Shown here piece by piece: positions 1 to 4,014 of a stretch of 64,000 nt of DNA. The notes beneath the pieces are model-generated. The model did not search any database and was not told where the DNA came from. It was given only the letters and a program-made list of their open reading frames with translations. A program made the translations under genes and the position numbers. Source of the stretch: Blastocladiella emersonii ATCC 22665 (taxonomy: Eukaryota > Fungi > Blastocladiomycota). The stretch spans positions 868,001-932,000 of the forward strand of contig JANHCV010000006.1 of the NCBI GenBank assembly GCA_025594325.1, read 5' to 3'. Position 1 is the first letter of the stretch. The number at the start of each line of letters is the position of its first letter.

Positions 1-1646
1 CGAGTCCTCGGTGCTGCTGCTGTGTTCGGCGGCGCCGAGGGGAGGGCTGGGTGGCGCGACGGCAAGCGGGTCTGGGAGAAGCGCAGATCGAGCTGGCGAT
101 GGACGCGATGGAACGACTGATGGTGCGGACTTCTGGCGGTGCGGGACAGGTGGGACGGGCACAGGTTGCGCTGGCGGTGAAGGCCGTGAAATCGACGCGG
201 TGGCCTTGTCAGCGACCACGGCGGGCGCCGACTTGGTCCGCGTGGTCGGCGGCTGCTTGTGCTGCGGCACAGTGGAACTTTCTGTCCTCGGCTCGGGCAC
301 GGGCGCCTGTGCTGTAGTCGCCGCCGCGGCCGCTGGACGACGCGCCGTTGCTGCGAGTACAGGCGTCGTCGCTGCCCGACGTGCAACCGGCCGCGACGCG
401 GCAGCGGACGCAGGCTTGTCCACCTCGGTCGCGACCTTCTTGACGCCCTTCTTGACCGGCAAGCGCGTCCTTGCTGCCTTCTCCGGATCCACCAGCTTCT
501 CGACCTCGGGGAACGCCTCCACGAACGCGCGCTCGAGCTGCGACTCGGGTGGGACCTGGACGCGCGTTGCTGCGCGGTCGACGATATAGTCGGCGAACGC
601 GACTTTGCGCCGGTCCCAGTCGCGCGCGCGGGCCGTCGCGAGGGCGCGGTGCACCTCCTCCTGGTCGCGCGCCGCGCGCGTCTTCCGCAGGGCCTCGATC
701 CCACGGGTCTGTGCGCGGTCCGCGAGCTCGGCGGTGCGGCGCGCACGTTCTGCGGCAGCGGCCACGAGTTCCGCCTCGGACGCTACTGCCTCGGTCGCAG
801 CAGCGGGAGCCGCGTCGGCGGCGGGCCGTTCGACGGCGTGCGGGATCCCCGTGCGCAGCAGCGTCGAGTGGAACCGCGTCGACTGGTAGTCGACAACGGG
901 CGTGCGTTTCTCGGTCCCGGCGGCCGATCGAGGCCGCGACCGCGGGACCTCGACGGCCGCGAGCGTCGGTTTCGGGACATGCGTCCGCGCGCGCGTCACG
1001 GACCGCGTGTTAGCCGTCTCGAGCGCCTCGCGGCGGACCGACGCGCGCAGCGCCGCGACGGCCGCGGGCACCTGCCGCTGCTCGTGCTCGACGGCGAGCG
1101 CGTGCCGCGCGCGTTCGGTTTCGGCGAGCTGCATGCGAGATTGCCGGTTCACCTTGGACGTGACGGCGCGCTCGCGCTGCGCAGTGGCACCGGCGGCGGA
1201 CCGGTGCGCGGCGCCGAGCTCGGTGGCGGGCGAGGCGGAGGCCGGGTCGAGCAGGTGCGACTCGACGTGTACGCCGTTGCGCGCCCGCGGCTTCTTGCGC
1301 GACTTGGCGACCGCGGCTTCCTATACCACGCGCGGGGTGAGAATCGGGGTGGGACCATGGCGATGGGGAGGGGAGGGCCCCGTACCGCGATCTCACGCAG
1401 GAGCGCCGGCTCGGCCTTTTCGCGCACTTCCTTGTAGCACTCTCGTCGTTCCCGCGCGAGCTCGCGTTCACGTTCTCTCACCTACTCACTCTTCGTGTGT
1501 GAGGACTCGGAAGGTGTGTGATGGTTCCCAGCGATGGACGGCGATCGGACCTGCGCCAACGTCGCGAGCCGGCCCTCACGCTCCCTCTCCCTGCGCAACC
1601 GCGCAATTTCATTCGGGCTGAGCAAGTAGTGCGACGGCGAGTTCAT
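1..1646 (-). CDS. CEP295/Ana1-like centriolar protein, N-terminal part (3' end runs off the window)
   Basis: Exons 1646-1551, 1481-1386, 1320-<1 splice via GT-AG introns into MNSPSHYLLSPNEIARLRREREREGRLATLAQ|VRERERELA...RAQTRGIEALRKTRAARDQEEVHRALATARARDWDRRK...QLERAF. This parallels the CEP295 N-terminus (LSPNEE...LLQVREQERDIA...KAHVRGFQAMKKIHLAQNQE...DLARRR...ELEFAF). Confidence 0.7.
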
Positions 1647-1735
1647 TGCAAGGAGTGGGGTGCATGGAAACGGCGCTGCATGTATGAAGTGTGTGTGAGA
1701 GACGCGTCGGCGCGGCGCGGCGCGGCGCGTCCGTC

Positions 1736-4014
1736 TCACCGCGGCGCCTCCCCGCTTCCGCTGCCGTTCGTGTTGGGCGGCGACATGCTCCGCAGCGGCG
1801 GCGACCCTTCACGACGGGCGTTCGCGACGCCGAGCGGGATCCCGACCGTGGGCGGGAGCCCGACGGCTCCGGGTGGGATGGCCGAGGTGCGGGGCCCGGT
1901 CCCGCGGCGCCGCGGGCCAAAGAAGTCGTCGAACATCTCCTTGCGGCGGCGGCGCTGGATCTCGCGCTCAAGCTCGCGTTCCGACATGGGGCCCTCGGGC
2001 GCAGCACCGGCGGCGCCCGCATTCGCCGAGGCACCGGCAGCGAGCGCGGCAGCAGGGTGCGCGGCCGCACGCCACAGTGCCCCTGCGTCGCGGTCGCCGC
2101 TGCCGGTGCTCGCATCGGCTGCGGCGGCCGGAGCACTGCTCGTATCCGAGTCGCGATTGAGCCCGATGGTGCCGAACCCGGGGAGGTAGAACCCGGCGTC
2201 CTCGGCGGCCGCGTCGGTGCCGCCCGCGCCGAGGCCGCCGGTCCCGACGGCGCCGTCAGCGTCGACGGTGGGCCCGTTGGTGCCCGGGATCCCGTCGGCG
2301 GTCGGGACGACCTCGCTGAACTCGGACTCGCCGGGGCGCGCGCGGGTCCAGAAGCGCGTGGCGTAGTCGTTGGAGCCCGTGCACAGGACGTGGCCGAGCG
2401 GGTGCCAGTCGAGGGCCCAGATGTTGGCGTCGTGCGCGGTCAGGACCTGCGAGATCGGGCCCTCGGTGCGGTCCGCGAGCCACCACAGCAGACTGCCCTC
2501 GGAGCCGCCCGACGCGAACAGGGTCTCGTGGTGTGGGTGCCATGCGACGGCTAGATGACGGGGGTCGAATGAGTGAGCGGTTTCGGGTGGGCGGATGAGA
2601 GATGGGGACGTACAGCAGACCTCCTTGGGGTGGCCCTTGAAGTTGGCCATCTCGCGCATGGAGCGAATGTCGAAGATCTTGATGTTCTGGTCGCGCGACC
2701 CGCTGAGCAGCCAGTTGCCGTTGCGGTTCCACGACACGGCGTGGATCGTGTTCTTGTGGCCGTGCCTACACGCGCGCGTACCGTCGAGAGTCAGTCCAGC
2801 TGCGATTCGCGCAAATGGCCCACACAGACGACGTACAGCGTGGTGATCTGCTTTCCCGCGCGCGGGTCCCAAAGCTTGATGAGGTTATCCTTGGACCCAG
2901 ACGCGATCATGGCCTTGTACGGGTGCCAGTCGAGGCACTTGACGTCCCATCCGTGGCCGGTCATGGTGGTTTCGCAGGTGCCCTGGTGGAAGCTCCAAAC
3001 CTTGACCGTCTTGTCGTCGGAGCAGGTGGCGAACTTGGCGTCCGAGGGGCTGAAGGAGATGCCGCGCACGGCCTCCTTGTGGACCTGGATCGACTTGAGG
3101 TTGTTCATGTTGCTCTGCCAGTACTTGACGTAGCCGGCGTTGTCGCCCGACAGCAGCCACGAGCCCGACCGCGACCACCGCATCGAGCGCACCGACGTCT
3201 CGTGCGCCTGCAGAATCGTCTCGAAGTTGAACGTCAGCCCGTTCCACAGCGTGAACTCGCCGCTCGCGGAACCGGTGATGAGGCGGCGGCCTTCGGGCGT
3301 CCACTACGCGTTGAGACGGCGGTGTTAGTGGGTGCAGGAGAGCAAGGATCGCGTGGCCGGAGTGGCGTACTCTCACGACGTTGACGTAGGTGCGGAACTT
3401 GTTCATGGACGTGTGGATGAAGCGCGTCGTGCACGCGTTGACGGGCTTGTCTGGTGTCGCCATAGGCGGGAGCATCTAGACACTCCAGCGTCAGCACCGC
3501 GGATCTCCCTCAACAGTGTGGGACAAGCCGTACGTTGACGAGGTACTCAAGGTCGGGCTGAATGACGGGACACGACGACAGACGCGACGGTGCGCGCGCG
3601 ATCTCGCGGTGCTGACACGGCGAACAAGGGTAGTGTGGTCAGGGAGGAGGAAAGGCCAGTGTATTCCGCGTCGGACAAGTGACAAGTTACCTGCTGGTAC
3701 AGCACGACGCCGCCGTTATAGTCGACGGTGCGGCGCAGGAACGACCTCCGCTGGTTGTTGCGCGCCTCGTCGCCGTCGTCGCCCCCTCCACCGTTGTTCC
3801 GGTTGCTGGGCCGGTCGCGGTCCCGGTCGCCACCATAGTCGCGCCCACCCCCGCCGTACGCGGACGGCCGGTCGCCGTCGCCGCGGAAACTCGGCGGCGG
3901 GCCGCGGTGGTCGCGGTCGCGCATGTCGCGGTACCTGCCCGGCGGCCCGCGGTGCTCGTTGTTGTTGTAGTCTCGGCGGTAACCGCCGCCGCCGTCGCGG
4001 TGTGAGTGATCCAT
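1736..4014 (-). CDS. PFS2: Polyadenylation factor subunit 2 / WDR33 (WD40), multi-exon
   Basis: [54 protein letters not shown] and [26 protein letters not shown] match the WDR33/Pfs2 repeats. Confidence 0.95.

Follow-up and report, generated by a model that had tools for sequence, protein, structure and literature searches.

The closest described counterparts proposed for the locus analysed here are the CEP295/Ana1 proteins, a family found in organisms that build centrioles, and CEP295NL/DDC8 (PF28375), their vertebrate paralogue. Human CEP295 (KIAA1731) is about 2600 aa long, and the C-terminal parts of the animal CEP295/Ana1 proteins bind CEP152/Asl and CEP192; CEP295NL/DDC8 is a vertebrate-level duplicate of about 480 aa and is testis-specific. 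Human CEP295 and Drosophila Ana1 are only 15% identical overall; what they have in common is a resemblance to Ddc8 at the N-terminus and a single motif at the C-terminus (PMC2965680), and weak similarity is therefore to be expected in this family. The DDC8-like domain of human CEP295 (aa 1-564) was found to be required for centriole localisation, directing the protein to the centriole wall, and PINA and PICA motifs are conserved in CEP295 (PMC5007451). The CR1 region, aa 19-134 of Ana1, is present in all CEP295/Ana1 homologues, and the main Cep135-binding helix of Ana1 is formed by aa 282-301 (PMC13422256).

The family has also been reported from a zoosporic fungus. Using hmmsearch with an animal CEP295 profile, Ito et al. 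2019 listed a CEP295 orthologue (GI 1028574944) in the chytrid Batrachochytrium dendrobatidis JEL423 (PMC6559791, source data to Figure 1). For the same species CEP135, SAS-6, CPAP and STIL were also listed, with CEP152 and CEP192 entered as "n.d." (PMC6559791). Like the organism studied here, B. dendrobatidis is a zoosporic fungus with centrioles, and the comparison made with it is a comparison with that published listing. An earlier note on this DNA had described the CEP295 module as one discussed mainly for animals. That view has to be amended in the light of the listing, since with this chytrid a CEP295 orthologue from a zoosporic fungus is already on record. No paper was returned by a text search for the N-terminal motif of animal CEP295.

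The window analysed was a 64-kb stretch of a Blastocladiella emersonii contig (G000:C18, positions 868001-932000), and the gene of interest lies at its left edge. It is a real gene with three exons on the minus strand. Exon 1 (1551..1646) provides 32 codons from the first ATG (1646) and bears an N-terminal block around LSPNE, while exon 2 (1386..1481) provides a further 32 codons over which the first long helix carries on. They are separated by intron 1 (1482..1550; 69 nt, GT..TAG), which could not be retained and read through because its final codon is an in-frame stop. Intron 2 (1321..1385; 65 nt, GT..TAG) leads into exon 3 (1..1320), which contributes 440 codons within the window and is open throughout. 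When the flanking DNA was read, exon 3 was found to run on beyond the window edge for 207 coding bases (69 codons) to a stop at C18:867791-867793, giving a predicted full product of 573 aa. GC3 values were 0.88, 0.69 and 0.83 for exons 1, 2 and 3, respectively. The earlier note had placed two short exons upstream of a frame open from 1320 to the window edge, and all of the peptides that it quoted were present on the minus strand. It was also right that the ORF track had missed the gene, which is absent from the ORF list because ORFs running off the end of the window go unlisted.

One alternative gene model, in which a further intron would carry the gene past the stop, was rejected because the conserved C-terminal motif, terminal in the two full-length relatives, is already at or near the end of the protein.

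Relatives of the protein were sought with full HMMER (phmmer) using exon 3 residues 1-300 as the query, which did not include exons 1 and 2, against 1.84 billion representatives at E≤1e-3. Four were found, all blastoclad-like and all named hypothetical. The full-length Catenaria anguillulae protein ORZ39952 (628 aa) matched at 4e-36 with 43% identity. The others were a JGI metagenome protein (455 aa), Allomyces javanicus KAJ3359796 (337 aa) and the full-length Blastocladiella britannica KAI9223228 (632 aa), the last at E=5e-4 with 37% identity over about 100 residues. No chytrid protein was among the matches to this query in the 1.84 billion representatives. Word-index protein searches with exon 3, with an alignment of the conserved halves and with the metagenome relative returned nothing or the queries alone; the first missed the known Catenaria relative and the second the known Allomyces relative, so these blanks carry no information. 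Metagenome scans with the family motifs found no relative, and a PDB profile search of the family was blank. The family is small and fast evolving, and it is seen only in Blastocladiomycota-like sequences, namely, those of Catenaria, Allomyces, Blastocladiella britannica and one metagenome contig. The B. britannica protein is much more distant from the exon 3 product than the Catenaria protein is; this reflects either rapid evolution of the family or a genus that is not monophyletic.

Support for the exons came from these relatives. Searches were run exon by exon, with the full-length Catenaria protein as a contiguous stand-in, and the profiles were made from database relatives only, leaving out the sequence of the target genome. 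Among 220 six-frame pieces, the four-relative profile matched the exon 3 frame at E=1.5e-76 over residues 62-507, reaching as far as the C-terminal motif. With the profile of the relatives' N-terminal region, the top-ranked piece was exon 1 (E=1.6e-6, profile positions 6-38) and the second was exon 2 (domain E=0.009, positions 36-64), the two matches being collinear, so that all three exons were recovered in collinear order by profiles built from relatives alone. The exon 1 product aligned with the N-terminal ends of the Catenaria protein and the metagenome protein. Intron 1 falls at the same codon position in L004, the contig of the metagenome relative, with ..RLAK closing one exon and VRQ.. 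opening the next. Across intron 2, 34 aa lie between the RR encoded by exon 2 and the VHVESH block encoded by exon 3; in Catenaria the figure is 35 aa. The predicted splice junctions, 1551/1481 and 1386/1320, rest on this comparison with relatives. In the metagenome relative the gene caller had dropped the first two exons, and its database entry is N-terminally truncated as a result; the region concerned (L004 3523-3766) has intron 1 at the identical codon, but the corresponding exon 2 has 22 codons rather than 32.

The family alignment contains a series of short conserved blocks. The block around LSPNE is followed by R-L-x-x-V-R and an Arg-rich helix, and a second block has the form A-N-x-R-S..A-R-x-H. 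Next is VVDYQSTRFHSTLL (856..897, minus strand; Y-x-x-T-R-F-H), a block within a non-helical linker in which the Y, R and H columns are invariant. The most conserved element is a central helix, RAQTRG..ALRK..ARDWDRRK (604..717, minus strand; about residues 266-303), with the family pattern R-A-x-x-R-G-x-x-A...A-R-D-W-D-R-R-K and invariant R, R, G, A, L, D, R and R columns. It is followed by QLERAFVEAFP (508..540, minus strand), of which the family form is L-E-x-A-F-x-x-x-F-P and the F..F columns are invariant, then by a variable Pro/Ser/Thr-rich stretch and S-M-F-T-G-L-S-A-P. The family C-terminal motif, W-x-T-x-T-x-D-E-M-x-D-E-L-G-S-x-L-S, occurs here as W-x-T-x-T-L-D-E-M-x-D-E-L-G-S near the end of the exon 3 frame, to the left of the window (C18:867833-867895, minus strand). 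It forms the extreme C-terminus of the two full-length relatives, whereas in the present gene and the two remaining relatives it lies within 13 to 48 residues of the end.

AlphaFold models of the Catenaria protein contained long confident helices at residues 28-86, 115-191, 264-343 and 353-392, together with a short C-terminal helix; elsewhere they were disordered, and no compact fold was present. Helix 264-343, the counterpart of the central helix, had a pLDDT of >90. The predicted layout combines long helices in the N-terminal half with a disordered tail rich in Pro, Ser and Thr and, at the C-terminus, a conserved helix motif.

As to what the protein is, the 573-aa product is probably a compact member of the CEP295/Ana1 family, to which we assign a probability of roughly 0.65. 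The independent tool evidence for this reading consists solely of the Atlas language-model feature search. When Catenaria residues 20-385 were searched against 7.7 million clusters, ranks 1 to 3 all belonged to PF28375 "CEP295NL", a family of Pfam 38.1, and the family was carried by 6/10 of the best family-bearing matches. The top three, chordate "CEP295 N-terminal-like" and "CE295 fragment" clusters, scored 0.85, 0.85 and 0.84, the first of them sharing 149 features with the query; these values lie below the tool's 0.9 line and are a lead rather than proof. With exon 3 alone, the same search returned unnamed clusters only, at 0.80, which fits a signal residing in the N-terminal block. The protein may also resemble human CEP295 motif by motif, a candidate likeness that the earlier note drew for animal CEP295/Ana1. 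The identification made in that note is supported in part, and no result refutes it. PF28375 clusters head the Atlas list; on the other side, none of the searches matched an authentic CEP295/Ana1 sequence with statistical significance, no ALMS motif was found and the protein is small.

Under one alternative, the protein is instead a lineage-specific blastoclad product made of charged single helices and disorder, with no common ancestry with CEP295, its likeness being one of composition (Arg/Glu/Ala-rich helices) plus one short chance motif. The phmmer search, for which the CR1-like block in exons 1 and 2 lay outside the query, found no animal protein at E≤1e-3 among the 1.84 billion representatives, the only relatives being the four blastoclad-like ones. 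When the three exon products and the four relatives were scanned with 24736 Pfam models, a set that did not include PF28375, no relevant family was matched, and these blanks may be false negatives. A C-terminal ALMS motif (PF15309), which the earlier note had proposed to look for, was found neither in exon 3 or the four relatives at E≤10 nor in a six-frame scan of the whole genome; the control genomes gave none either. A shape search with the confident N-terminal model (pLDDT 87) returned generic long-helix proteins alone, as did the Atlas structure search; searches of this kind are uninformative for long helices. The Atlas score, moreover, falls where chance matches are also found, 0.8 being reached by one in three shuffled proteins. 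A lineage-specific origin nevertheless appears unlikely, if by no means negligible. Three Atlas matches out of 7.7 million clusters fell on precisely the family already named in the earlier note, which makes a chance neighbour improbable, and the conserved blocks are short, specific and not of low complexity, being invariant between the metagenome contig at 40% GC and the present locus at about 70% GC.

A second alternative accepts the relationship to the CEP295 N-terminal module and disputes the role. The protein would then act like CEP295NL/DDC8: its place would be in the flagellum or axoneme of the zoospore, and it would not be a factor for centriole-to-centrosome conversion. Its 573 aa and its N-terminal-only layout without an ALMS motif are nearer to DDC8/CEP295NL than to CEP295, and the nearest Atlas clusters bear the name CEP295 N-terminal-like. 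Ddc8 itself is located on the tails of spermatids and spermatozoa (PMC2965680). The paralogue is, however, a vertebrate gene, and a blastoclad gene could not be its orthologue; the similarity of layout would have to be convergent. The gene is also present in a single copy, and no second CEP295-like gene was found in the genome. A DDC8-like role is considered very unlikely.

Compared with CEP295 and Ana1 themselves, the blastoclad protein, taken as a compact member of that family, has both likenesses and differences. It likewise has an N-terminal helical region that opens with a short conserved block, here the one around LSPNE, and it likewise consists mostly of long helices plus disorder. In Ana1, Cep135 is bound near where the blastoclad invariant helix sits (residues 270-300), a match by position only; the Ana1 helix has invariant Arg, Phe, Ile, Val and Glu. 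At 573 aa, or 628 and 632 aa in its full-length relatives, the protein is far shorter than Ana1 with 1729. Unlike CEP295, it lacks the long central coiled-coil repeats and the ALMS motif, and the blastoclad family has a conserved C-terminal helix motif of its own, which may or may not correspond to the PICA/CR2 motif of CEP295/Ana1 proteins.

A mechanism can be proposed from this layout. The N-terminal helices would correspond to the CR1/PINA "CEP295NL" region plus the rest of a DDC8-like domain and would form a centriole-docking module. The invariant central helix is a candidate counterpart, by its position, of the Cep135-binding helix of Ana1. The protein might thereby dock on Cep135/Bld10 and on the microtubules of the zoospore basal body, while the conserved C-terminal amphipathic helix, which may recruit a partner, would be presented at the tip of a long disordered arm rich in Pro, Ser and Thr. 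Neither the extended coiled-coil middle of the animal proteins nor their ALMS end would be present. The absence of CEP152- and CEP192-binding parts fits the chytrid listing, in which neither partner was detected.

Carried further, the proposal would make the blastoclad protein a "mini-CEP295" whose parts are joined by a disordered linker in place of 1000-2000 residues of coiled coil. We regard this as improbable. If true, it would show the smallest set of parts with which the family can function and would mark the CEP152/CEP192-binding and ALMS parts as later animal additions. Should the homology hold, blastoclad fungi would own the shortest known CEP295/Ana1 relative, and such a natural minimal version would help to show which parts of this poorly conserved scaffold are essential for centriole docking and which are animal additions that serve to build pericentriolar material. 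It would also give a name to proteins of Catenaria, Allomyces and Blastocladiella that are at present annotated as hypothetical. The gain would be incremental, because the CEP295 orthologue of a zoosporic fungus has already been published for the chytrid.

Elsewhere in the genome, a match to the SAS-6 N-terminal domain was detected at G000:C17:1734831-1735124 (64 bits, 4e-16). With SAS-6 encoded, the centriole assembly set is therefore taken to be present. The matching stretch holds one in-frame TGA, probably belonging to an intron.

The surroundings of the CEP295-like gene were also recorded. Upstream on the same strand lies a WD40 gene (ORF 1736-2872; WD40 repeats by Pfam), and only 89 bases separate its stop from the ATG at 1646 (window 1647-1738), so the promoter and the 3' end of the WD40 gene must overlap or be very short. 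On the other side, at a distance of about 3 to 7 kb from the left edge of the window, are two further genes: one encodes EB1 (L003 1058-1684, minus strand; EB1 C-terminal motif, 2e-15), the other a protein with a doublecortin domain (L003 3819-4802, plus strand; DCX, 3e-16). Both lie within about 8 kb of the CEP295-like gene, which places three microtubule-related genes close together.
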